A DNA stretch of 64,000 nucleotides from Octopus bimaculoides (taxonomy: Eukaryota). Shown piece by piece: positions 5,251 to 51,704 of the stretch (position 1 is its first letter; each line of letters starts with the position of its first letter). Made by a program: the position numbers and the translations under genes. A model generated the notes under the pieces. That model worked only from the letters and a program-made list of their open reading frames with translations, did no database searches and was not told the DNA's origin. The stretch is from NCBI RefSeq assembly GCF_001194135.2, contig NC_068994.1, positions 22,666,698 to 22,730,697 on the forward strand. Reading direction: 5' to 3'.

Positions 5251-6399
5251 TATGAGGTGGTATCAAAAAGTTCCCAGACTAATTCTGTAGCATGCCAGCA
5301 GATGGTAGCACATGATTGCATGTGCTACCATCTGCTAACAGTGGCCTTCATGAGGCAGTGTGCCAAGTGATATTGAAGTGTTTACTTCACAAGTTGTGAA
5401 ATTTGTGCTTTTGTGATCACATATATTCTGTAGTCCACAATTGTCATGGACAGGAAATTGGAACAGAGAGCCAATGAGAAATTTTGTGTTAAACTTGGGG
5501 AGTCTGCTACTGAGGCATTGAGCATGCTTTCGTAAGCTTACGAAGCAGTGGGTCATATGCAATGTTTCGAGTGGTACAGGTGTTTCAAAAGTGAAAGACC
5601 ATCCATAGAAGATGATGAATGATCTGGAAGACCTGCCATGAGTGTCACTCCTGAAAATGTGGAGAAAATTCATCAGAGAACAATCAATGACATTGATGAT
5701 GTTGTCGGTCTGTTGTACAGGTTCATGCAGGTAATTCTAATGTCTGAATTGAACATGCAGCATGTCTCTACCAAGTTTGTCCCCCGCTTGCTCACCATTA
5801 AGCAGGAAGAACATTACACTGAAGTCCATCAAGATTTCCACCAGTGAGCCACTGCTGACCCGTCCTTCATGCCAAAGATCATCACCGATGATAAGAGTTG
5901 GGTGTACGGGTACAACCCTGAGACAAAACAGTTGTCACAATGGAAAAGCACTTCATCTCCACTACCAAAGAAGGTACAATAGAGCTTACAGCTCAATGAA
6001 GAGCATGCTCATTGTTTTTCTTTTTTGCCATCCATGGTATTGTGCATCAAAAATTTATCCCCCAGGCCAGACCATCAGTCAAGAGTTCTACTGTGATGTT
6101 TTAAAGAGTTTCAGAGAGGACATTCAGCGAAACTGACTGGATCTGTTGAGCGCAAAGAATTGGATTCTTCACAACAATGCACCCTGTCACTGAGCTCTCC
6201 TCACTCGTGAGTTTCCCACCAAAAACAACATGATATTACTTCCACACCTGCCCTGTTTGCCAGGTTTAGCACCTGCAGACTTCCATCTCTTCCCCAAGAT
6301 GAAAATGCAGTTCAAAGGTCACCATTTTAACACCGTTGTCGAGATCCAGAGCAAATCGTAGAAGGTCCTTGACTGACTTACAGAAAACAACATCAAAGT
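5251..6399 (+). mobile_element. Second mariner relic (different subfamily), 3' end lost in gap
   Basis: TA+TGAGGTGGTATCAAAAAGTTCC TIR-like start; KFVPRLL, IITDDKSWVYGY, HNNAPCH, LAPADFHLFPKMK motifs with stops and frameshifts. Confidence 0.8.
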
Positions 6400-6866
6400 N
6401 NNNNNNNNNNNNNNNNNNNNNNNNNNNNNNNNNNNNNNNNNNNNNNNNNNNNNNNNNNNNNNNNNNNNNNNNNNNNNNNNNNNNNNNNNNNNNNNNNNNN
6501 NNNNNNNNNNNNNNNNNNNNNNNNNNNNNNNNNNNNNNNNNNNNNNNNNNNNNNNNNNNNNNNNNNNNNNNNNNNNNNNNNNNNNNNNNNNNNNNNNNNN
6601 NNNNNNNNNNNNNNNNNNNNNNNNNNNNNNNNNNNNNNNNNNNNNNNNNNNNNNNNNNNNNNNNNNNNNNNNNNNNNNNNNNNNNNNNNNNNNNNNNNNN
6701 NNNNNNNNNNNNNNNNNNNNNNNNNNNNNNNNNNNNNNNNNNNNNNNNNNNNNNNNNNNNNNNNNNNNNNNNNNNNNNNNNNNNNNNNNNNNNNNNNNNN
6801 NNNNNNNNNNNNNNNNNNNNNNNNNNNNNNNNNNNNNNNNNNNNNNNNNNNNNNNNNNNNNNNNNN
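6400..6866. other. Assembly gap
   Basis: Run of N. Confidence 1.
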
Positions 6867-8142: not shown

Positions 8143-9618
8143 TCATATGTTCATATAATGTGGTACATCAGTGTGTTGTGAATCTGGTTGTGGTGTTGGC
8201 ATGTCTGGAACTTGTGAATTTGGCTGTTGTGATGGAGTCAGATCTGAGTCTTGTGAACCTTGAGGTGGTGGTAAGTCTGTATGTTGTGAACCTTGTTGTG
8301 ATTGAGGAAGGTCTGCATGTTGTGGAGCTTGTGGTATATCAGATGGTTGTGATATGGATTGTGGCATATCTGTGTGTTGTGAGTTTTGATGGGATGACAT
8401 ATTTGTATGTTGTGTGTTTTTTTGTAGATCTTGCTGCTGAGGTGATATATTTGCGAGTTGTGAAGTTTGTGATTGTTGCTGTGAAGTTTGTGACTGGGAT
8501 ACATTCAGCTGAGACTGATGAATATCAATGAATTGTTGATTCTGGGTTGATTGAATTGCCTGTTGTTGTTGTTGTTGTTGTCGTGGTGATCGCTGCAGGT
8601 GTTGAGGGACACAGCTCAGTTTTCTGTCACCATTATTAGTTTTCTGATGCCTCTCAAGATGATCTTTTCGAGAAAATGCAAAACCACATATGTTGCATTT
8701 AAAGGGGCGCTCCCCAGTATGAGTACGTTTGTGCAACTTTAGTGATGATTTCTGAGTAAAAGACTTTAGACAAATATCACAGCTGAACATTTTTTCATTT
8801 GTATGAGTTCTTCTGTGCCGTTCAAGTGTGCTATTATCATGAAAGGCTTTACCACAAATTCCACATTTGAATGGCAGTAGTGCTGCATGTATACGTTCAT
8901 GCACTTCACCATCAGAGTGCTCTGTGAAAGCCTTCCAGCAAGCCTTACAATTGAATGGATTTTTAGGACTTTGATATTTTTGCATATTGCTTACATTTGT
9001 AGGTGCATTACTTCTTGGAATAATGACAGCATCATGACTTCTAAAATGCCTTGTTAGATCTCCTTTACGAGAAAAAGCACAGCCACAGATACTGCATTTA
9101 AAATTCTTCTCAGCTAGATGATGTTGGTAAATAGTAGTATTGCTCATATGAGAGTGAGTTGTGGTATTAACATGTGTTCGCATGTGGCGTGTAAGATTAC
9201 CATTTCGAGAAAATATACAGCCACATATATGACATTTAAAAGATTTGTCAGTACGTTGATGGTTACAAGAAACACTACTACTGCTGAAAGTGGTGGTTAT
9301 TGGAACTCTGTGAGTTCGCATGTGACGTGTCAAATCTCCATTACGAGAAAAGATACTCCCACAAATATTACATTTCAAAGGCTTTTCTCTTGTGTGTATC
9401 ATTTGATGTTGTTTTAGATGATACTCTTGACTAAAAACTTTACCACATGTGTCACAGTTAAAAGCTTTGTCCATTTGGTGGGTCCCTTTATGTTGCTCAA
9501 GGTTGTCGTAACAAGTGAAACCTTTTCCACAAATTTCACAACTATGTGACCGTTCTACACCATGAATAGAATCAACCAAGTCAAAGTTAGGAATATTTGA
9601 TGGTATCATATGATTCAT
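8143..9618 (-). CDS. C2H2 zinc-finger protein, 491 aa: 8 C2H2 fingers plus 1 atypical terminal finger, Gln-rich repetitive C-terminus
   Basis: Uninterrupted 1476-bp ORF; CxxC-x12-HxxxH at aa 27, 55, 83, 129, 175, 224, 252, 280 and an incomplete finger at 308; TGERPF linker; candidate acceptor TTTCAAG 10 nt upstream of the ATG; no KRAB/SCAN/BTB recognised. Confidence 0.93.
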   Translation of the reverse strand: MNHMIPSNIPNFDLVDSIHGVERSHSCEICGKGFTCYDNLEQHKGTHQMDKAFNCDTCGKVFSQEYHLKQHQMIHTREKPLKCNICGSIFSRNGDLTRHMRTHRVPITTTFSSSSVSCNHQRTDKSFKCHICGCIFSRNGNLTRHMRTHVNTTTHSHMSNTTIYQHHLAEKNFKCSICGCAFSRKGDLTRHFRSHDAVIIPRSNAPTNVSNMQKYQSPKNPFNCKACWKAFTEHSDGEVHERIHAALLPFKCGICGKAFHDNSTLERHRRTHTNEKMFSCDICLKSFTQKSSLKLHKRTHTGERPFKCNICGFAFSRKDHLERHQKTNNGDRKLSCVPQHLQRSPRQQQQQQQAIQSTQNQQFIDIHQSQLNVSQSQTSQQQSQTSQLANISPQQQDLQKNTQHTNMSSHQNSQHTDMPQSISQPSDIPQAPQHADLPQSQQGSQHTDLPPPQGSQDSDLTPSQQPNSQVPDMPTPQPDSQHTDVPHYMNI

Positions 9619-12070: not shown

Positions 12071-14195
12071 ATCATCATCATCATCATCGTTTAACGTCTG
12101 TTTTTCATGCTAGCATGGGTTGGATGGTTCAACCGGGGTCTGGGAAGCCAGGAGGTTGCACCAGGCTCCAGTCTGATCTGGCAGTGTTTCTATAGCTGGA
12201 TGCCCTTCCTAACACCAACCTCTCTGTGAATGTAGTGGATGCTTTTTGCATGCCACCAGCACAGGGGCCAGAGGAGGCTGGCAATGGCTACGATCGGTTG
12301 GTGCTTTTTACGTGCCACAGGCACAGAAGCCAGTCAAGGCAGCGCTGGCATCGGCCACGTTCAGATAGTGCTTTTTACGTGCCACCAGCACGGGTATCAC
12401 AGCTACAATTTCCATTTGGTTTTCATTTTGATGTTGATGTACTTGACTCAATAGGTCTCCTCAAACACAGCAGGTTGCCCGATGATCCAAGGTACTTTTG
12501 AATGGGCTGGGGTTGATTATGTGAAACTGGTGTAGGATACAGCCGTGAACTCACTTTATTCGCAGTCACAGCATATCTCCAGAGGTCTCAGTCACCAGTC
12601 ATTGCCTCTGTGAGGCTCAATGTTCGAAGGTCATGCTTGACCACCTCATCCCATGTCTTCCTGGGTCTACCTCTACCCTGGATTCTTTCAACTGTTTGGG
12701 AGTGGCACTTCTTCACACATGTCTCCTCATCTACCCGTAGTACATGATCATACTAGTGCAAATGTCTCTCTTGCACACCATATCCTATGCTTCAACATTT
12801 CTCTCAGGGCGTTTACACTCTGTCGTGTGTGCACACTGACATTACACATCCAGTAGATCATGCTCGCTTCATTTCTTTCAAGCCTATGCATGTCTTCAGC
12901 AGTCACAGCCCATGTTTCATTGCCATGAAGCATGGCAGTTCGCACACATGCATCGTACAATCTACCTTTCACTCTGAGCGAGAGGCCCTTTGTCACCAGT
13001 AGGGGTAGAAGCTTTCTAAACTTTGCCTAGGCTATTCTTATTCTAGTGGTAACACTCTCTGAGCATTCACCCCCATTACAGGCTTGGTTACCTAGGTAGC
13101 AGAAGCAATCAACTACTTCTAGTTTCTTTCCCCGGCATGTGATGGAGTCTGTTTTCTGAGCATCTGTGGTGTTATTTGCCCCTGTGCATCTGCTGCACGT
13201 GAAAGCTATCATCTCAGTTAATCTTCCTTTGATGTTGCTGCACCTCTTATGTGTCCATAGCTTACACTGAGTACATCTTATGGTGTTTCTACCTACACCT
13301 TTTCTACACATCGAGCAGGGCCACCTACCTGAGGGGGTGTGTGTGATGTGTTCGCCTTCCTACTTACTAGAACTTTGGTCTTTGCAACATTGACTCTAAG
13401 GCCTTTTGATTCTAAACCTTGCTTCCACACCCAAAATTTCTTTTCTAGTTCTGGTAGTGATTCTGCTATAAGGGCCAGGTCATCAGCATAGAGGAGCTCC
13501 CAGAGGCAACCCGTCTTGAATTCCTCTGTTATTGCCTAGAGGACTATGATGAATAAAAGGGGACTGAGGGCTGAACCTTGGCGGATCCCTACTTCTACTC
13601 AGAATTCTTCACTATATTCATTGCCAATCCTAACCTTACTAACGGCCTCTCTGTATAGGGCCTGTACAGCCCTTATTAACCATTCATCAATCCCCAGTTT
13701 CCGCATCGCCCACTAGATAAGGGATCGAGGGACCATGTCAAAGGATTTCTCCAAGTCCACAAAAGCTAAGTATAGGGGTTAATCTTTAGCTAGGTATTTC
13801 TCCTGCAGTTGTTGAACCAGGAATATGGCATCAGTGGTGCTTCTACCTGGCACAAAACAGAATTGCATCTTATCTAAGCAGACTCTCTCCCTAATGAGAT
13901 GGGCTATGACTCTCTCCGTGACCTTCATCACCTGATCCAGCAGTTTGATACCCCTGTAGTTATTTCTATCTAGAGCATCACCTTTACCCTTGTAGCAGTT
14001 GACTATGGTACTGCTACACCAGTCATTGAGTATGATTCCATCACATCATGAACTACTTGGTTTACAAATGTGGGTGACTAGGCCATAGTCCTCACCACCA
14101 GCATCTCAGAAGTGATTCCTGATGAGCCAGGGGCTTTTCCTGGCTTCATACCCTTAACTGCTTTATCTACCAGGGAGTTGTCTATTCATATAGCT
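12071..14195 (-). mobile_element. RTE-clade LINE, 5'-truncated (RT + PHD insert + 3' UTR + (GAT)n tail), pseudogenised
   Basis: GKAPG, QGSALSPLLFIIV, WELLYADD (13479-13490), LEVVDCFCYLG, GRGRPRKTW motifs; stops and frameshifts; (GAT)n tail at 12071. Confidence 0.9.
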
Positions 14196-14618: not shown

Positions 14619-14804
14619 AATTAATGGCAAACTCGGTCGTCTGCAAAGGTGGCTACTCACCATATTCTCTAAGCCCTCTGCTACTTCATGGGAACTTCAT
14701 AAACAAGCAGGGACCAGAGTATTCGAAGGAGGATCCCATGCTGCTAAGTCAAAGTCTTCAATCTTTCTAACAATCCATTCTTGTCTACAGCACTCAACCA
14801 GCTT

Positions 14805-15010
14805 TTACCTTTTACCTGTTTCAGCCATTTGACTGTGGCCATGCTGGGGCATACCTCTTGAAAGGTTTTACTTGAATGGATCAACCTCAGGACATTTTTT
14901 TTAAAGCCTGGTACTTATTCTATTGGTCTCTTTTGCTGAACCACAAAGTTATAGGGACAAACACACCACCACCAATTGTCAAGCAGTGGGAGACAAACAC
15001 AGACAGAAAG
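14805..15010 (-). mobile_element. SINE family A, 3' part
   Basis: Reverse complement of the 17380-17572 segment (TTTCAGCCATTTGACTGTGGCCATGCTGG...GTACTTATTCTATTGGTCTCTTTTGCTGAACC). Confidence 0.75.
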
Positions 15011-15027
15011 ACACCCCATCACATACA

Positions 15028-15069
<42 letters not shown>

Positions 15070-15565: not shown

Positions 15566-15589
15566 CATACATATATATATATATATTTA

Positions 15590-15760
15590 TATACGATGGG
15601 CTTCTTTCAGTTTTTGCCTACCAAATTCACTCACAAGGTTTTAGTGGGCCTGACATTGCACTAGAAGACACTTGACCAAGGTGCCACACAGTGGGACTAA
15701 ACATGGAACTATGCAGCTGGGAAGCAAGTTTCTTACCACACAACCATACCTGCACCTATA
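15590..15760 (-). mobile_element. SINE family A, 5' part (a further partial copy at about 16000-16150)
   Basis: CTTCTTTCAGTTTTTGCCTACCAAATTCACTCACAAGG...CAAGGTGCCACACAGTGGGAC. Confidence 0.75.
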
Positions 15761-17182: not shown

Positions 17183-17572
17183 TAGGAGTGGCTGTGTGGT
17201 AAGTAGCTTGCTTACGAACCACATGGTTCCAGGTTCAGTCCCACTGCGTGGCACCTTGCGCAAGTGTCTTCTACTATAGCCACAGGCTGACCAAAACCTT
17301 GTGAGTGGATTTGGTAGACGGAAACTGAAAGAAGCCTGTCGTATATGTGTATATGTGTGTGTGTATGTTTGTTTGTCCGTGTTTGTCCTCCCCAACATCA
17401 CTTGACAACAGATGCTGGTGTGTTTGCGTCCCTGTAACTTAGCGGTTCGGCAAAAAGAGACCCATAGAATAAGTACTAGGCTTACAAAGAATAAGTCCTG
17501 GGGTCGATTTGCTCAACTAAAAGCGGTGCTCCAGCATGGCTACAGTCAAATGACTGAAACAAGTAAAAGAGT
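17183..17572 (+). mobile_element. Full-length tRNA-derived SINE family A
   Basis: Pol III B-box GGTTCAGTCCC at 17232, CORE-like GCACCTTGCGCAAGTGTC, internal (GT)n, 3' GACTGAAACAAGTAAAAGAG. Confidence 0.85.
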
Positions 17573-18339
17573 AATCATTAGTGCCTGATAGGAGTATGGG
17601 TGTGGGTGTGTATGACTGCAATGAGTGCTACTGGTAACATGAAATCTTGTACAACTTGTTATATTGTTGGGTTAGTGACTAAAGTGGCACCTCACCAGGC
17701 TAGCCCAGAGGTTTTCAAAAAACCAAGCAGACAAAAGAACAGGTGAATCAGTACAATTTCTGTAGAATAGTGCACAAAGATATAGTAATACTTAAGATTG
17801 TGAATGAGTGTTCTGTAAGACCAATTTGGGAACAACAGACACACAGTTCTTGTTAGAACATCTCTTCAAGAAAGGAGCTGACAGGGACGTTTAAGTGTAG
17901 TGGATGTAACCTTACAGGTGAAATCAAGATACCAGAAGCCAGGAGAGTACACTCTAAGACAAAAGCATGTTTTGGCAGTAAACTTTAATGTATTTTCTCA
18001 TATACTAGATTTCTGGCAGTACGAGTTGTCTTAGATTATTCTTGCTACTAGATCTATTGCTTTCAAAGTAAAGATAGTGACACAGGAAAATGTGCACCCA
18101 AAACTTAATTGCACAGGTATTTTTTCATGCAATTTGGGTCACAGATCTTTATTCTCAGGGATAATCAATGTTACTATGGCACACGAGTATAACGCATGCC
18201 TACTGTAGTTTTATTGCCAGTTAGAGCACAAAGTAAGTGAAATATAGACAGTAGTAGTGATAATTCTATAGTTAGACACAGCAGCAATCACAAAAAGAAT
18301 TTCAGATGTTAAAACTACATTAAATGATGAATAATAAAA

Positions 18340-20034: not shown

Positions 20035-21117
20035 AGCTTTTTTATCTCAGGTTTTGTTGGAGTTCCTGGAGTCTTGCATGCATAATGGGCTTGCTACCTG
20101 CAGCTTATGATACCATGCTATCTGTTCTTTTCAACTTTCTAATGCTTTCCTGATTATTCTGGATGTGCCAAGGAAGCAAACCTTTTGTAAAAATTCTATT
20201 TGGTACTCTATTCCAATTTCCTTTATATTCCTTTTGATGCCTTCTGATACTGTCCTCAAGAACCCAGCAATAATTTTTGGCACTATCTTCACCTTCTTCA
20301 TTTTCCATAGCCAAGCTAATTTGTACTGAAGAGGACTGTATTTATCCATTTTTTCGCCTTCCTTCTTGAAGGGTCAAAGGGGCACACATCAACTATCTTG
20401 ACGACCACCACTAGGTCCGGTCTGTTATGCTCTAGCACCTGATCTGTTTGGATTGGGAAATACCAATTCTCCGACTCTGCCACTCTCTGCAGTTTGTGCT
20501 CGTACCACATCTTACCTCTCTCTAGCCCCCACTTTTCGCACAGTTTCCAATATAGCACTTTCACTACCTTATGTTGCCACAACTTGTAATAGTTTTGGAC
20601 AAGTCTAAGGTTTTCGATCATGATATGGGCAATGGTTTCATCCACTCTGTTACAAATGCAGCACAGCGGAGACACTTGCTCATTCCTAAAGTTGACCCTC
20701 CAATTCGTGGCCAAAGCTTGGTCTTGCACTGCCAGTATAGTGCTCTCAGTCTCTTTATTCAGTGTTCCTTTCTTCAGCCAATTTCACCTGTTTTCCAGCA
20801 ACTTCTGTTGTGGCTACATGGAATTGATTGTGTAGTCCCTTGTTGTGTAATGCATCTTAATGTCATTGTTCAACATTTGGTAATTTCAGGCAAAATTCTA
20901 CTGCATCAACTTCTACACATTCATGTTGTTGGGGTGTGTGCAGCATTGTATGTTCTTTTCTGTTGTTGGGAGTGTGCAAACTCTTCCCAGTATTGCATTG
21001 CACCAGTTTCTTTTTATTTCTGAGGTGTGGTGCAGTCTTTTGTTGTATTAGAGTTTGTATTGTGTGTTGTGTGTGTGATGCATCAAGTATCCAGCCTGCT
21101 TGTGTTAGTTTATTTCT
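20035..21117 (-). mobile_element. Second R4/Dong-like LINE 3' fragment
   Basis: QDQALATN, C..C....ETIAHI zinc knuckle, EHNRPDLVVV..IVDV RLE motif, LQKVCFLGTSRIIRKAL. Confidence 0.8.
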
Positions 21118-33479: not shown

Positions 33480-34664
33480 TTGGGTTGTCCAGAAAGTTCG
33501 TGCCGATTTTTAAAGGAAAGAAAAAGGTCAATAAATACTTGCCATTACATTTTTAATCAACCAAATACGAACCATTTTGATGCAAAATGCGTCTCCATTT
33601 TTCCTTTAACTTGAAAATACCTTTTTCCCAAGATTGAGGTGGTTTCATGGCAAAGAATTCATCAACGTATCTTTTTATGTCATCCAAAGAATTGAATTTT
33701 TACCATTAAGACTATTCTGCAGAGACCTGAATAAGTGGAAATCCAAAGGAGCAATATCTGATGAATATGGAAGGTGTGGTAACACATCCCAGCTGAGCTG
33801 CAGCAATTTTTGTCTGTTTCCCAAAGAAACGTGCAGTCTTGCATTATCATGTTGGAAAACAACACNNNNNNNNNNNNNNNNNNNNNNNNNNNNNNNNNNN
33901 NNNNNNNNNNNNNNNNNNNNNNNNNNNNNNNNNNNNNNNNNNNNNNNNNNNNNNNNNNNNNNNNNNNNNNNNNNNNNNNNNNNNNNNNNNNNNNNNNNNN
34001 NNNNNNNNNNNNNNNNNNNNNNNNNNNNNNNNNNNNNNNNNNNNNNNNNNNNNNNNNNNNNNNNNNNNNNNNNNNNNNNNNNNNNNNNNNNNNNNNNNNN
34101 NNNNNNNNNNNNNNNNNNNNNNNNNNNNNNNNNNNTCATGTGGTACCCAAACATCTTAGCAATTTGTGTACCCAGGCTTTACCAGGTGCTCATGAATGAC
34201 AGATTTTGATAGGTTGAGGCTTTCTGCCAATTCTTGGGTTGTGCAATGTGGGTTATTCTCAATTCATGACTTGATTTGGTCATCATCTATAGTGGATGGT
34301 CTGCCTGATCGCTCTTTATCAATAAGGCTACAATCTCCAGCTCGGAACCTTGCGAACCACTTCTGTACAGTTCTTTCAGATAAAGAAACATCACCATAAA
34401 CTGTGCATATTTCTTTGGTTGCTTGTGAAGCATTTTTCCCTTTACCGAAAAAGAAGCATCAAGTGCCGAAAATGAACTTTCTTATCTTCCATTTTAAAGG
34501 ATTACAGAATTAACACAGGTTATAGGGACATAAACCTTCTTCCATGAAAAGATAGCATAAACTGTGCTCCAAATGGAGGTGTAGTCAAATCCTATTTTAT
34601 GGACTCAACCATGTTCTAAAATAAGTCAAAAGGTAAATCAGCACGAACTTTCCAGATAACCCAA
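33480..34664 (-). mobile_element. Full-length Hsmar1-like (DD34D) mariner relic with internal gap
   Basis: TIRs TTGGGTTGTCCAGAAAGTTCGTGCCGATTT / AAATCAGCACGAACTTTCCAGATAACCCAA with TA TSD; FQHDNARLH...YSSDIAPLDFHLF. Confidence 0.9.
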
Positions 34665-35436: not shown

Positions 35437-35585
35437 GAGGCACAGGCATGGTTGTGTGGTTAGGAAGCAAGCTTCCTAATCACATAGTTTCCAGTTCAGT
35501 CCCACTGTGCGGCACCTTGGGCAAGTGTCTTCTTCTATAACCTCAAGCCGACCAAAGCCTTATGACTGAACTTGATAAGCAGAAG
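35437..35585 (+). mobile_element. SINE family A, 5' part
   Basis: GGCATGGTTGTGTGGTTAGGAAGC...CAGTTCAGTCCCACTGTGCGGCACCTTGGGCAAGTGTC. Confidence 0.8.
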
Positions 35586-41384: not shown

Positions 41385-41765
41385 TCTGTGTCATGTGGTT
41401 AAGAAGCTTGCTTTGCAATCATGTGGTTACTGGTTCAGTCCCACTGTGTGTAGTACTTTGTGTGTGGTACTTATAGCACCAGAGCAACCAAATGACTTGA
41501 GATTGAATTTAGTAGATGGAAACTGTGTGAAAGCTTGCCATATAAATATATGAATGTGTGTCTTTGTGCTTGTCACCTCATCCACCACATGACAACTGGT
41601 GTTGGTTTGTTTATGTCCCTGTAACTTATTAGTTCAGCAAAAGAGACTGATAGAATAAGTACCTTGTTTAGAAAATATGTAATGGCATAGATATGTTTGA
41701 CTAAAAACTCCAAAGCAATGTCCTATGGTTGCTGCAGTGCAGTGACTGACGCAAGAATAAAAAAG
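41385..41765 (+). mobile_element. SINE family A, near full length, diverged
   Basis: GTGGTTAAGAAGCTTGC...GGTTCAGTCCCACTG...GATAGAATAAGTACC. Confidence 0.75.
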
Positions 41766-47370: not shown

Positions 47371-50153
47371 CAATTAACTTCATTACACTTCTCTGACACA
47401 ATTATTATCCACTCAAGTCAAGGATTGATAGTTTAATACACATTTACGTTGGTAGGTGGCTTCTCTCATGTCAGATGACAAATATCATTTGAAAATTTGA
47501 TAAATACATTTCTTCAATCACTTTCAGAAATAAGCGACTGGGATTTATGTTATGAGCAAAACTAAAAAATAAGTTGTCTTGAGAATCAATTTATAAAGTG
47601 CTTTCTTAACCAGATAATTTTATGCTTAATTCTTCAGTTTAATAATACATTGTTATAGCACAAGATCTAAGTCTGGAGAAAGGTACAGAAAATTAAAATC
47701 AGTCATTATATTCAATTAGTACATCAATCTGGAATAAAACGGATAAAATAAAAAAAAAATGTAAATAAATCTGAAAACATTTTAGCATTTGTTTCATGAA
47801 TTTTTATTAACTGCACAAACAATAAAAGTGCACTTAACCAATATTTCAGTTTATGTCAATAACACTGTGATTTGACATCTGTTGAGCATAATACAGAAAA
47901 CACTTAAGTAGCCTAAAATTTGGACTATACAATAAAGGGCTGGAAGAAAATAGTTAGACTGGCTTGTGCTAGAAAAAAAATCATAACACTTTCAGCAGGA
48001 ATGTAATAATGAAATTAAATTTACATTTCATTACCTATTGTTGAAAGAATTTCTTAACAAATAGAACACATTTCAAATTCATTTGTTTGTTTTCTAAACA
48101 CTCAGTTGTGCTGATAATATTGTTTTGAAAATTAGTTCTTCTATTTCCACATTAAAATTTTAAAATTAATTAGAAATAGCAGAAAATAAGAAATAAATTA
48201 AGATTGTTATTCTTGAAACAGCACAATTTTCCTGAAAGGAATTCAAATGGCAAATTATTCACAAAAATCAGATGTTTTTTTTCCTATCACAAGATAAACC
48301 TTTAGCAGAGAGATAAATATATGAATGTCTGTGTCAGATGTTCTCTTTTTAGATAGGAAGTACTTCAATTATTGAAGTTACAGTGTCAAGCAGATCTGTG
48401 GTCTTGAGGCAGCTAAACAAATATTTAGAGGTAACTCGATATACATTATGCAGTCTGGAATTTCAATCAAGCATTCCTATTCTGGAGACATTTATTTTAA
48501 AGATATTTTGACTAAAAATTAAGCTATTGAAATGCTTAATTATTTTTAATGTTATACTTCCATAGCATGTTTTTGTCTATCGACATAAACAGCTTTTCAA
48601 GAGTTATAGGAAGTTCCTTCTCTCCACAGAGAAATTATTGAAAACATTGTTCCATACATTTGACCATCTGAAGATATAAAATGCCTATAATAATTATGTA
48701 ATTTTTTAAAAATAGACGTAACAGCTAATTGAATCAAATTCAAAGAATGTGTTACCATGATGATATATGTTTTATCAAAGTAACATAATCAATGTTTCAA
48801 TATTCAATTTTCCATTTCCAATGCAGATTTATCTGAAAACAAGTGATAAGTTACCTTAAATGTTTTCTCCATGTGAAAAGATTGATTTATAACAAGATAA
48901 ATAGTGCAATCTTTACCAAATAAGTAAAATGCATAATGAATTAGCTGGATAAAAAAGGAAGTTTCTCTAAGAAGTGGAGAAAAAATTAACACTCACAAAA
49001 GTAACAGAAAAAGAAGAAAAATTTAAAGACAGAAAAAATAAATATGTTTGGAGTTTGATTATCTAATGTTACAATTTTTAGAACACTGTTCGCAACATTT
49101 TGTACTTTTCTCTTTCAGATGATATATTTGAAGATTTGTAATCTTTATAAAGATTTACATTTCTCTTCAGACAACTCTATTAACTAAGAAAAACAGCAAA
49201 AAAAAAAAACTTGGTATTTAAACAGAAGGCTGACCATATTAAAGAAACTAAAACAAAAATTATTCAGTAATTGTTTTCTAAGGAAACTGTTGTTAAATTC
49301 AAGATTTATTTTGAGTTAAATTTCTTATGATTCTCAATAAAAGTTAATAATTTATTTAAAAAGCAATAGTTGTTTGGAGCATAAAACATCTTTGTATATA
49401 CACTAAGTACTATACACTTTTTTTTATGTACACAGTGTGNNNNNNNNNNNNNNNNNNNNNNNNNNNNNNNNNNNNNNNNNNNNACATTTCTCTTCAGACA
49501 ACTCTATTAACTAAGAAAAACAGCAAAAAAAAAAAACTTGGTATTTAAACAGAAGGCTGACCATATTAAAGAAACTAAAACAAAAATTATTCAGTAATTG
49601 TTTTCTAAGGAAACTGTTGTTAAATTCAAGATTTATTTTGAGTTAAATTTCTTATGATTCTCAATAAAAGTTAATAATTTATTTAAAAAGCAATAGTTGT
49701 TTGGAGCATAAAACATCTTTGTATATACACTAAGTACTATACACTTTTTTTTATGTACACAGTGTGCGTGCAGGGGGTGATGTATGCTGGCAAATTGTGT
49801 GAAATTTGGAAAATATCAGTCTATTTGTAATTATTTAGCCATGTCCCTCTGCGTAAAAAGTATTCAAAGACGAGATCACATTCTACATAATGAGACCTCT
49901 TCAAAAAATGCTAATTAGTCACAGTATAGTAAACAACTAAAATATTGAAGAAGAAACTAAGGCTAATAAGCCTCGTATATACAACTTGTTAGTTAAGCAA
50001 GTTTCAAAAAATAATGCATCAGTGTGTGTGTGTGTGTGTGTGTGTGTAAATATTTGTGTTTGAGTGTTTGCCTATGTGTGTGTTTGTGTGCTTTAGTAAA
50101 AATGCAATCAATTACATGATACATAGATATTGAAAAAGGATATTTTCAGAATT

Positions 50154-51704
50154 TTATTTGCTCTGTGTAATCTGAGAAGTTGGAATAATAATTTCATGAG
50201 AGACATTTGCATGAAGAGGTACATTGAGCTGTGTGGCAGCTGGGTACATCTGAATAGTTGGGAATATTTGAGCTGTTGATTGTGAGATTTCAATAGTTGT
50301 GGGAAATGTTGACAGCATTGGATAGATTTGGTTTGTGCCAGTGCTGTCTGTCTGATTGACAGTAGCTTCTTGTTGATACATGGCAATAGTTCTGGCTACA
50401 TCAGCTGGATCTGTACCAGGGGCATGAGTAACAATTAAATTGCCTTCAGCATCAGTCACAGCAGATGCATCAGCTGGAACGACGACTGCTACCTGTTGAC
50501 AGTTTCCCTCAGGTGTGATAATATCTTCCTTCAGGTCAATAAGTTGCTTGGGAGGAACACAGCTCAGTTTACGTTCTCCTTGATTATTTTTCTTATGTTT
50601 TAGTAAGTGGTCTTTCCGTGAGAAAGCAAAACCACACCTGTCACAGACAAAAGGTTTCTCCCCTGTATGGATGCGATGATGGACTCTGAGATAAGACCTG
50701 CGTGAAAAACTCTTTTGACATATGTCACAGCTATAAAGTTTCTCATTAAGGTGAGTTGATTTGTGACGCTCCAAGTTTTCATGACGGGAGAAACATTTTG
50801 AACAGTAATCACACTTGTAAACCATACCAGTTCCACTTAAGTCAGCAGTAGCTTGATATATCTGATGCTGTTGTGTATTTTCCTGGCCTGGCTGTATATT
50901 AGTAGCACTTTGGAGAGTTGGTATTATTTGGTTGGGATGGATAATACTGCAAGAATGGTAAGTGGTCTTGTTACCATTAGTAACAGCTGCTACTAACTGG
51001 TCTCCCGAATTGTGAATAATACCATCATTATTGTTGGTGTTGCAAGAGATGTCAGTACATTTAAAAGCTTGCTGCAAATCTGTTCCTTCCATATCACTAG
51101 TGGTTTGTACTGTAACAACTTGTATTTGTGTTTGGTCAACAAGAGAAGTTTGTTGTTGCTCTTGTTGAACGGTCTCACATTGGCTGTTAAAACTATCAGA
51201 ATCCATATTATTGTTTTCATTCTGCATATGAACCTGCTGAGTTGTGCTTGTAACAAGTTCAACAGAAGGAAGAGCCTTTATTTCTCCATGCTGCTTAGTT
51301 TGATGCCGAACAAGATGGTCTCCACGATAGAAAGCACACCCACATACATGGCATTTATATGGACGAGTATTTGTGTGGATACGTTGGTGCACAGTTAAGT
51401 AAGACCGACGTGCAAAAGCTTTGTGACAGATTTGGCAGTTGAACATTTTAATTCCTTGATGTCCTCTGATGTGGATCACTAAATGATCATTGCGCGAGAA
51501 AGCACGACCACACAAATTACACCCAAAAGGTTTTTCTCCTGTATGAAGACGACGATGCAACTTCAGATAGGATTTCTGACTAAAATCTCTGCCACATGTT
51601 TCACATTTGAAGACTTCACGGCGCAGATGACGAATGCGATGTCTCTCCATGTTGTCTCGGCGAGAGAACATCTTTCCACAAAGGTCACAGGTAGGCTTCT
51701 TCAT
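50154..51704 (-). CDS. C2H2 zinc-finger protein, 516 aa: 5 + 3 finger clusters (last finger atypical), Gln/Thr-rich spacer and tail
   Basis: Uninterrupted 1551-bp ORF; fingers at aa 6, 34, 62, 90, 118, 298, 326, 354; TGEKPF linkers; candidate acceptor TCTGTTATCTTTCTAG at 51771-51772, 66 nt upstream of the ATG. Confidence 0.93.
   Translation of the reverse strand: MKKPTCDLCGKMFSRRDNMERHRIRHLRREVFKCETCGRDFSQKSYLKLHRRLHTGEKPFGCNLCGRAFSRNDHLVIHIRGHQGIKMFNCQICHKAFARRSYLTVHQRIHTNTRPYKCHVCGCAFYRGDHLVRHQTKQHGEIKALPSVELVTSTTQQVHMQNENNNMDSDSFNSQCETVQQEQQQTSLVDQTQIQVVTVQTTSDMEGTDLQQAFKCTDISCNTNNNDGIIHNSGDQLVAAVTNGNKTTYHSCSIIHPNQIIPTLQSATNIQPGQENTQQHQIYQATADLSGTGMVYKCDYCSKCFSRHENLERHKSTHLNEKLYSCDICQKSFSRRSYLRVHHRIHTGEKPFVCDRCGFAFSRKDHLLKHKKNNQGERKLSCVPPKQLIDLKEDIITPEGNCQQVAVVVPADASAVTDAEGNLIVTHAPGTDPADVARTIAMYQQEATVNQTDSTGTNQIYPMLSTFPTTIEISQSTAQIFPTIQMYPAATQLNVPLHANVSHEIIIPTSQITQSK

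Follow-up and report, generated by a model that had tools for sequence, protein, structure and literature searches.

Thousands of C2H2 zinc fingers are labelled 'degenerate' in databases and assumed to be dead; recent nuclear magnetic resonance (NMR) work has found that in several cases such fingers do fold, either on three ligands or with a Cys standing in for the missing one. Our analysis concerns a finger that lacks its fourth His in Octopus bimaculoides and that closes the finger arrays of two genes, gene 1 and gene 2, in a 64,000-nucleotide stretch of contig NC_068994.1 (positions 22,666,698 to 22,730,697), hereafter the window. Both arrays end in C-x2-C-x12-H-x3-N followed by G-x-R-K-L-S-C-V-P, and this terminal finger together with its extension is referred to as the module. 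Judged by comparison with its relatives, the module was shown to be a maintained C-terminal unit that defines a C2H2 family of octopods and cuttlefish, rather than a product of decay. Its mechanism would lie between two known kinds of non-canonical finger, and the comparative evidence favours a role for the lone Cys of the extension as a displaced fourth ligand. Conserved fingers without a fourth His and fingers of the CCHC type are already documented, and the cephalopod module is a variant among them; no published description of this module was found.

The first of these two kinds is the finger-type CCHC finger of ZNF750 (Z*), FOG/U-shaped, NEMO and BCL11A (PMC10465944), which shares with the module a C-x2-C-x12-H core, a ββα fold (predicted in our case) and a Cys in place of the last His. 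The ZNF750 finger has been solved, with C27, C30, H43 and C49 giving a spacing of H-x5-C (PMC10465944). In characterised CCHC fingers the Cys lies about 1–6 residues past the His, whereas the spacing is x11 in gene 1 and gene 2 (x12 in their relatives P0003 and P0018); furthermore, CCHC fingers are known as protein-binding domains, whereas the cephalopod module ends a DNA-type three-finger array and retains the DNA-reading residues. The second kind comprises Z7 of ZNF711 and the C2HR finger of Nizp1 (ZNF496), where a non-ligand residue (Phe or Arg, as against Asn or Lys in the cephalopod family) stands in for the fourth His in a domain that is nonetheless conserved and where, in Nizp1, water completes the zinc site (PMC4838375). 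Neither possesses a conserved downstream Cys, while a Cys is always present, and relocates, in the cephalopod family.

Three further systems show partial likeness. Finger 7 of ZFP57 (H374...C391; PMC10465944 Table 3) has the same CCH core with a fourth ligand that may lie beyond the annotated boundary, although candidates of this type are single and without test, whereas comparative evidence over six old paralogue groups is available for the cephalopod module. The degenerate finger of mammalian ZNF7 (C..C-x12-H-x3-N-TQKKPxRC.EC) also carries Asn at the fourth position and a Cys 12 past the third ligand, but this finger is internal, the next unit keeps C-x2-C, and there is no sign of common descent with the cephalopod module. 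The dipteran CGxΦ dimerising C2H2 domains (PMC12774644) likewise combine a finger core with an adjacent conserved stretch that holds a non-canonical Cys; that stretch, known from Diptera only, includes a Gly and precedes a single isolated finger on its N-terminal side, whereas the cephalopod L-S-C-V-P is C-terminal to a three-finger array. At the level of gene families, the coleoid C2H2 expansions (PMC12513265) are similarly KRAB-less, intronless and common to octopus and decapod lineages, which suits the 'coleoid' duplication layer; this 2025 survey of cephalopod C2H2 genes mentions degenerate fingers, linkers and motifs nowhere (0 occurrences).

Among the database matches, two other sets of fingers resembled the module. 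In the ZNF7 relatives P0125, P0144, P0148, P0167, P0177, P0178, P0183 and P0204 the fourth position is Asn (Ser in one) and is followed by a C-x2-C unit without His; a composite or borrowed-ligand site is conceivable there too. In P0420, a ZNF605-like protein of Pelobates fuscus, F-x-R-K-E-H-L-x-R-H closes each of three clusters; the fourth His is missing there, and a Cys lies 7–8 residues past the His.

Anatomy of the terminal module

Gene 1 and gene 2 are the only two zinc finger genes in the window; they are separated by 42 kb on the minus strand, and the public annotation calls each of them as a gene (GCA_001194135.2; CM046614.1, near 22.7 Mb). Pfam found C2H2-type fingers and nothing else in both gene products (zf-C2H2 in gene 1, 1.1e-43). 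The features of the two genes that concern the module are as follows.

8143–9618, minus strand: gene 1, an uninterrupted and intronless coding sequence for 491 residues with nine C-x2-C-x12-H units (open reading frame list)
8719–8871, minus strand: two intact C2H2 fingers of gene 1 upstream of the terminal finger (residues 250–300), both ββα in AlphaFold2 (AF2) models
8635–8703, minus strand: terminal finger of gene 1, FKCNICGFAFSRKDHLERHQKTN, a PF00096 match
8695–8697, 8686–8688 and 8647–8649, minus strand: ligand codons C308, C311 and H324 of gene 1
8650–8670, minus strand: recognition helix of gene 1, RKDHLER
8635–8637, minus strand: N328 of gene 1, replacing the fourth His
8605–8634, minus strand: conserved extension of gene 1, NGDRKLSCVP, with the lone Cys C336 at 8611–8613
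50154–51704, minus strand: gene 2, an uninterrupted and intronless coding sequence for 516 residues with five N-terminal and three C-terminal finger units
50667–50819, minus strand: two intact fingers of gene 2 upstream of the terminal finger (residues 296–346; AF2)
50583–50651, minus strand: terminal finger of gene 2, FVCDRCGFAFSRKDHLLKHKKNN, with a non-synonymous substitution rate (dN) of 0–0.066 among its group A relatives (listed in the next section)
50643–50645, 50634–50636 and 50595–50597, minus strand: ligand codons C354, C357 and H370 of gene 2
50598–50618, minus strand: recognition helix of gene 2, RKDHLLK
50583–50585, minus strand: N374 of gene 2, replacing the fourth His
50553–50582, minus strand: conserved extension of gene 2, QGERKLSCVP, with the lone Cys C382 at 50559–50561

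The whole module thus spans 8605–8703 in gene 1 and 50553–50651 in gene 2. Its finger core reads C-x2-C-x3-F-x5-L-x2-H in both genes, with the first three ligands and the hydrophobic core of a classical C2H2 finger present, and the lone Cys stands 28 residues past the first Cys with no His or Cys between it and the third ligand. Comparison of the 33 module codons (F-x-C to C-V-P) of the two genes gave 12 identical, 12 synonymous and 9 non-synonymous pairs, with proportions of non-synonymous (pN) and synonymous (pS) differences of 0.19 and 0.71. The conserved block stops sharply at C-V-P, as pN jumps to 0.78 in the next 33 tail codons.

The original prediction, which was made from the window's letters, had read these elements accurately: the peptides that it quoted are exact in both genes, Asn occupies the fourth-ligand position of each, the lone Cys has the 28-residue spacing that it gave, and the codon differences that it listed as synonymous (gca/gct, ttt/ttc, tct/tca, cga/cgg, gat/gac, cat/cac, and AGA versus CGT) are all right. 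The ranges that it assigned to the broken finger (8605–8865 and 50553–50813) are correct as coordinates, but already begin at the first Cys of the third-from-last finger and end with the Pro of CVP; they take in the last three fingers, and the module is narrower.

It had also placed the lone Cys in the register of a truncated next finger, and in this too it agreed with our alignment, where N plus xGERKLSC is spaced like H plus TGEKPFxC. The stretch x-G-E/D-R-K-L-S-C aligns position for position with the inter-finger linker T-G-E-K-P-F/Y-x-C; what is kept from a TGEKP-type linker is the Gly, the acidic residue, a hydrophobic residue at −2 and the Cys, with a one-residue insertion in two groups of the family. 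This register supports an interpretation of the lone Cys as the first Cys of a neighbouring finger that would have been lost. Internal finger comparison for the origin of the C-terminal triad gave near-equal scores for registers 1 and 3 (43 versus 39–46 identities out of 85). Duplication of fingers 1–3 with the start of finger 4 was considered as the source of the triad and rejected, as the registers score alike and the source finger cannot be named; it is the register and the linker residues that carry the proposed origin from a truncated finger.

The recognition helix follows the pattern R(−1)-K-D(2)-H(3)-L-x-R/K(6). In fingers of the Zif268/Sp1 type, Arg at −1, Asp at 2, His at 3 and Arg or Lys at 6 read a G-rich triplet. 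Because these DNA-reading positions are conserved, we infer that the terminal unit is a folded, zinc-binding ββα finger that still reads DNA, and 'broken', as it was originally called, is probably the wrong label for a finger that looks functional. Of the 23 positions of the PF00096 profile, the alignment reaches the 22nd in gene 1 and the 21st in gene 2, and the isolated modules scored 31.9 bits (gene 1, above the 25.2-bit gathering cut-off) and 21.3 bits (gene 2, below it). In a Pfam scan of the modules no model covered the extension, although the original prediction had allowed that an existing one might; matches to zf-BED (E 0.027) and to BIRD-IDD C2HC fingers (E 0.05–0.26) were sub-threshold, covered the common core only and were rejected. 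Two AF2 runs with family alignments predicted a ββα unit, with two short strands and a helix at segment residues 77–88, in models that carry no metal; the predicted local distance difference test score (pLDDT) of the helix was about 70–83 for gene 1 and about 76–85 for gene 2. The closest solved structures found by Foldseek were DNA-bound three-finger arrays of the Zif268 type.

Conservation in octopods and cuttlefish

The module was found in at least six paralogue groups from octopus, argonaut and cuttlefish. Groups A–C came from whole-protein searches, and groups D–F from inspection of further matches.

Group A: gene 2, P0122 (Octopus sinensis/vulgaris), P0123 (Argonauta hians), P0124 and P0131
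Group B: P0102 and P0174, with Lys at the fourth-ligand position
Group C: gene 1, P0003 and P0004
Group D: P0040, H-K-Q-T-N-A-G-N-T-R-L-S-C-V-S
Group E: P0018 (Octopus vulgaris), H-R-R-G-N-K-K-K-G-K-R-W-S-C-V-N
Group F: P0088 and P0069, H-L-R-G-N-K-C-E-G-K-I-Q-N-F

By cluster membership P0003, P0102 and P0040 are at least 90% identical to proteins of Acanthosepion (Sepia) pharaonis, so that this cuttlefish has members in groups B, C and D, while Octopus or Argonauta members occur in A, B, C and E. Octopod and cuttlefish members therefore stand together in at least two paralogue groups (B and C), indicating that the module was present and already duplicated before octopods and decapods split. 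That split is placed in the Permian–Triassic, well over 200 million years ago.

Both Cys, the Gly, Phe, Arg and Leu of the core, the third-ligand His and the lone Cys were invariant in 14 sequences from groups A–E, and the Asp-His of R-K-D-H-L and the Leu two residues ahead of the lone Cys were nearly so. The lone Cys is the sole residue of the extension that is invariant throughout groups A–E; K-L-x-C is invariant in groups A–C, and the extension consensus across the family is G-x-basic-basic-L/W-S/N-C-V/I. At the fourth-ligand position group B has Lys and the other five groups (A, C, D, E and F) have Asn. It is accordingly the absence of His combined with the presence of a Cys that is conserved, rather than Asn itself, and the change from His to Asn, which had been put forward as the conserved feature, does not hold for the family.

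Among group A members dN was 0–0.066 for the terminal module, in the range of the intact fingers (0.016–0.14) or below it, in comparison to 0.33–0.76 for the inter-cluster spacer and 0.10–0.40 for the tail; the synonymous rate (dS) was saturated in every pair except the closest. These values, taken from coding sequences, show that the whole unit is under strong purifying selection at the level of the protein. Gene 1 and gene 2 have 14 identical bases in common (AAACTGAGCTGTGT), and a constraint on the nucleotides themselves (RNA structure or an editing site) was considered for this run and rejected, as the same codons vary synonymously elsewhere: in other species the K-L-S-C-V-P codons are AAG, CTA/TTA, TGC, GTG/GTA/ATT and CCC/CCA. 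This synonymous variation between species places the constraint on the protein.

A neutral relic (a decaying last finger) or an annotation artefact, in which a hidden exon boundary conceals a normal finger of the mature protein, is highly improbable given these data. Degenerate terminal fingers are common enough to keep the relic in view, and in 416 unrelated poly-ZNF proteins 91 of 6401 CCH units had no fourth ligand; very few of the latter, however, had a lone Cys at +28, and the rarity of such units together with the pN contrast indicates that the module is more than chance. Decay also sits poorly with a dN of 0–0.07 over saturated dS and with retention in six paralogue groups of octopods and cuttlefish. 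The artefact is opposed by gene models and transcript-derived assemblies of several species that read through the module without a break; a hidden intron or splice site at the motif was rejected, as the genes of the relatives are contiguous single exons and their tails end in conserved in-frame motifs. The original proposal of a maintained, subfamily-defining module is thus borne out, with at least six groups and a dN as low as that of intact fingers in place of two isolated genes with dN/dS near 1. Neither had any relative restored the His or lost every Cys, the other outcomes that had been set against it.

Searches beyond these groups were less informative. The protein of gene 1 itself, although it is in the public collection, was missing from the best 120 matches of a word-indexed search with gene 1, so that absence from those homology lists is weak evidence. 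A profile of the 46-residue module alignment, run against 5.8 billion proteins with a candidate selection that favoured short sequences, yielded 38 short generic ZNF fragments. The module motif was in none of the top 150 of 1.84 billion representatives searched with HMMER and the same profile, where ranking by summed score favours giant poly-ZNF proteins, and chiton, scallop and Solemya ZNFs among the matches listed had no motif.

The orthology of P0122 and P0004 with the window genes is uncertain, which leaves the conclusion on conservation unaffected. The closest O. sinensis relatives, one gene 2-like (locus L001) and one gene 1-like (L003), lie at 42.99 Mb and 28.79 Mb of CM016872.1, placing P0004 14 Mb from P0122 on one chromosome in comparison to 42 kb between the window genes, and outside the coding sequence only dispersed repeats align between these loci and the window. 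In the tree P0122 has the Argonauta protein as its partner instead of gene 2, which conflicts with the species tree, and gene 1 pairs with a cuttlefish protein and not with P0004 (84% bootstrap). The gene 2-like proteins of O. sinensis/vulgaris and Argonauta end early (...ATTQCLINKT-stop), without the last 25 residues; these early ends lie at about 11452–11473 in L001 and L002 and about 12584–12605 in the Argonauta locus L004, where the window continues through 50154–50228. The early stops and the tree grouping point to hidden paralogy or lineage-specific tail loss, and the true O. sinensis orthologue of gene 1 may have been missed by the retrieval.

Role of the lone cysteine

In the mechanism that we favour, the downstream Cys would serve as the fourth zinc ligand, and the result would be a C2H...C site whose His-Cys loop has 11 or 12 residues. 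This Cys would be the remnant of a TGEKP-type linker and of the first Cys of a neighbouring finger otherwise lost, and in group F a proximal Cys five residues past the His would meet the same need after the distal Cys had gone. We hold this borrowed-ligand model tentatively, at just under an even chance. The fuller claim, of a C-x2-C-x12-H-x11-C site with a geometry unseen in solved ββα fingers, reading DNA and with a Cys that evolution can move within reach, is advanced with somewhat more reserve.

Within 14 family proteins, all 24 of the internal fingers that end a cluster retain the fourth His, with positions +2 to +14 free of Cys, in contrast to the last fingers, of which 14 of 14 have no fourth His and do have a Cys (12 at +12 or +13, two at +6). 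A His at x3–x5 of the last finger was found in none of the 14 family proteins or their cluster members.

Group F provides the second line of evidence. Its distal-Cys column is Asn and a new Cys stands five residues past the His, so that H-L-R-G-N-K-C matches the H-x5-C spacing of ZNF750 exactly. The arrangement recurs in five sequences of two clusters, and the DNA of a genome assembly and of a sequencing-run assembly differs by 7 synonymous and 1 non-synonymous changes; groups F and A co-occur in one assembly. After the linker and Cys columns had been taken out, a neighbour-joining tree of every three-finger unit that ends a cluster placed the last unit of group F as sister to that of group C with 100% bootstrap, nested among lineages that have the distal Cys. 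Because of this nesting, the simplest history would be that one lineage dropped the distal Cys and gained a proximal one. Such relocation is the strongest argument for a ligand role, since it is hard to see why a Cys with an unrelated role should be dispensable only where a classical fourth ligand had appeared. Of the two mechanisms originally suggested, a C2HC variant that uses the distal Cys and a docking motif for a cofactor, the relocation in group F thus favours the first.

Several points weigh against a ligand role. The 24 internal and 14 last fingers that are contrasted are linked by phylogeny and do not count as independent observations, and a disordered spacer seldom contains Cys in any case; the weight of the ligand case is therefore borne by the invariance of the Cys across six old paralogue groups together with group F, where the relocation is itself a single evolutionary event. 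No solved finger-type CCHC finger has a His-Cys spacing of more than about 6 and a loop of 11 or 12 residues is unprecedented, while the far-downstream Cys of ZFP57 finger 7 is a proposal with no experimental test (PMC10465944 Table 3). Z7 of ZNF711 (PMC11030341) and the C2HR finger of Nizp1 (PMC4838375) fold and bind zinc with three ligands, joined by water in Nizp1, indicating that a fourth protein ligand is not required, and a nearby downstream His of ZNF711 is not a ligand (PMC11030341). In both AF2 runs the pLDDT of the linker and Cys was only about 55, with a disordered tail, and conservation extends to the residues around the Cys (basic, Leu/Trp, Ser/Asn, Val/Ile), which equally suits a linear motif or an added strand.

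These points can alternatively be interpreted as a three-ligand CCHX finger, with water or a weak fourth ligand, joined to a separate conserved appendage in which the Cys is buried or forms an interface without serving as a ligand. The appendage might act as a helix cap with basic, TGEKP-like contacts to the DNA backbone, or as a strand for cofactor docking or dimerisation. We consider this a strong rival, if a somewhat less likely one. Natural CCHX fingers are stable and functional (PMC11030341, citing Kluska 2018 and Simpson 2003; PMC4838375), dipteran C2H2 domains dimerise through an adjacent strand with a conserved Cys-Gly motif (PMC12774644), and mammalian ZNF7 relatives likewise retain a finger with a His-to-Asn change. 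The pattern basic-hydrophobic-polar-Cys-hydrophobic is conserved around the Cys and persists in group F as K-I-Q-N-F without it, and AF2 did not pack the Cys with confidence. A tridentate finger with an appendage, however, leaves unexplained why the distal Cys was lost solely in the lineage that gained the x5 Cys, why the Cys is the one extension residue held constant from group A to group E, and why the His-Cys spacing is nearly fixed at 11 or 12 residues, which would be needless for a free-standing motif.

A linear or regulatory motif that involves no zinc is improbable. It might, for instance, be a basophilic-kinase site at R-K-L-S, or the Cys might be modified or sensitive to redox state and so control the DNA-binding fingers beside it; a motif of this kind would account for an extension that is conserved while the tail beyond it is not. 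R-K-L-S also suits the R-R/K-x-S consensus of kinases of the protein kinase A (PKA) type. Against a kinase site, the Ser is Asn in group B and lies in a Gln/Asn context in group F, and several members have Leu, Gly or Thr in place of the first Arg; moreover, the core of the finger as a whole, with both Cys, the Phe, Leu and His and the DNA-reading positions, varies little or not at all, a constancy that an unused fold would not need, and AF2 predicted a normal finger. An intermolecular zinc bridge falls within the small probability left to other readings. On balance we retain the displaced fourth ligand as the favoured role of the Cys, at the strength given above.

Tails, other features of the window and implications

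Downstream of the module the tails of gene 1 and gene 2 cannot be aligned with each other, as was originally reported, but each is conserved among its own relatives, which the original account of unalignable tails had missed. Three segments of these tails were mapped.

8146–8169, minus strand: C-terminal end of gene 1, DVPHYMNI, kept in group C relatives by alignment
50241–50306, minus strand: tail motif of gene 2, FPTTIEISQSTAQIFPTIQMYP, kept in groups A and B and resembled by a motif of group F
50181–50228, minus strand: tail of gene 2, with its final LNVPLHANVSHEIIIP kept in gene 2, P0124 and P0131 and its opening LNVP kept in group B

Gene 1 starts with MNHMI and ends with DVPHYMNI before the stop codon, and both ends are kept in its relatives, the group C forms being MNH(M/I)I and (D/E)VPHY(M/I)NI-stop. 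The conservation of DVPHYMNI in group C indicates that the Gln-rich tail of gene 1 is translated as far as the stop codon. This tail (8146–8391, minus strand; residues about 410–491) is rich in Gln, Pro and His, and S-Q-H-T-D-(M/L/V)-P recurs in it about five times in loose form. The last copy merges into the DVPHYMNI that P0003 and P0004 have in common, and a docking motif is conceivable here. In gene 2 the tail motif FPTTIEISxxTAQIFPTIQMYP, found in groups A and B with an echo in group F (MYPATIQMYPTSIQLYPGTPVFPTIQ), consists of repeats of a (F/Y)P(T)xIQ unit, for which Pfam gave no match.

Elsewhere in the window, two 283-bp copies that are 100% identical (49157–49439 and 49484–49766) stand on either side of a run of 44 N (49440–49483), about 390 bp downstream of the gene 2 stop, and are not reported by Tandem Repeats Finder (TRF); the pair is almost certainly an assembly artefact around the gap rather than a tandem repeat of biological origin. 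A dispersed repeat of about 390 nucleotides occurs at 17184–17574, with more copies near 644–788, 14803–15039, 15567–15759, 35438–35584 and 41394–41705. It has up to 87% identity to copies in O. sinensis/vulgaris (L001–L003) and shorter matches in Argonauta (L004), and looks like a family resembling short interspersed nuclear elements (SINEs) that is spread across octopods. Apparent transposon remnants were observed at 20316–20729 (minus strand), 5762–6136 (plus strand) and 33675–34154 (minus strand); an open reading frame among them has a weak, sub-cut-off match to zf-RVT (E 2.4e-4), which suggests the ORF2 tail of a long interspersed nuclear element (LINE). Open reading frames beside large N gaps (6400–6866 and 33866–34135) contain HDNARLH...D, which we take to be mariner/Tc1-like and which had no Pfam match to confirm it.

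The cephalopod family amounts to a natural experiment on the fourth ligand, in which the His has been absent since before octopus and cuttlefish diverged, while a Cys was always kept and was once moved to the classical position. Should the finger prove simply tridentate, the module would be one more conserved CCHX finger and ordinary as such. If the distal Cys is indeed a ligand, the rule that a fourth ligand lies within 3–5 residues would be missing functional domains, and the pattern described here could be used to revisit other degenerate fingers, such as those of ZNF7 and ZFP57. Octopus has roughly 1,800 C2H2 genes. The module is a sequence signature of an old and conserved subset of them, and may help to separate conserved regulators from the fast-evolving bulk.

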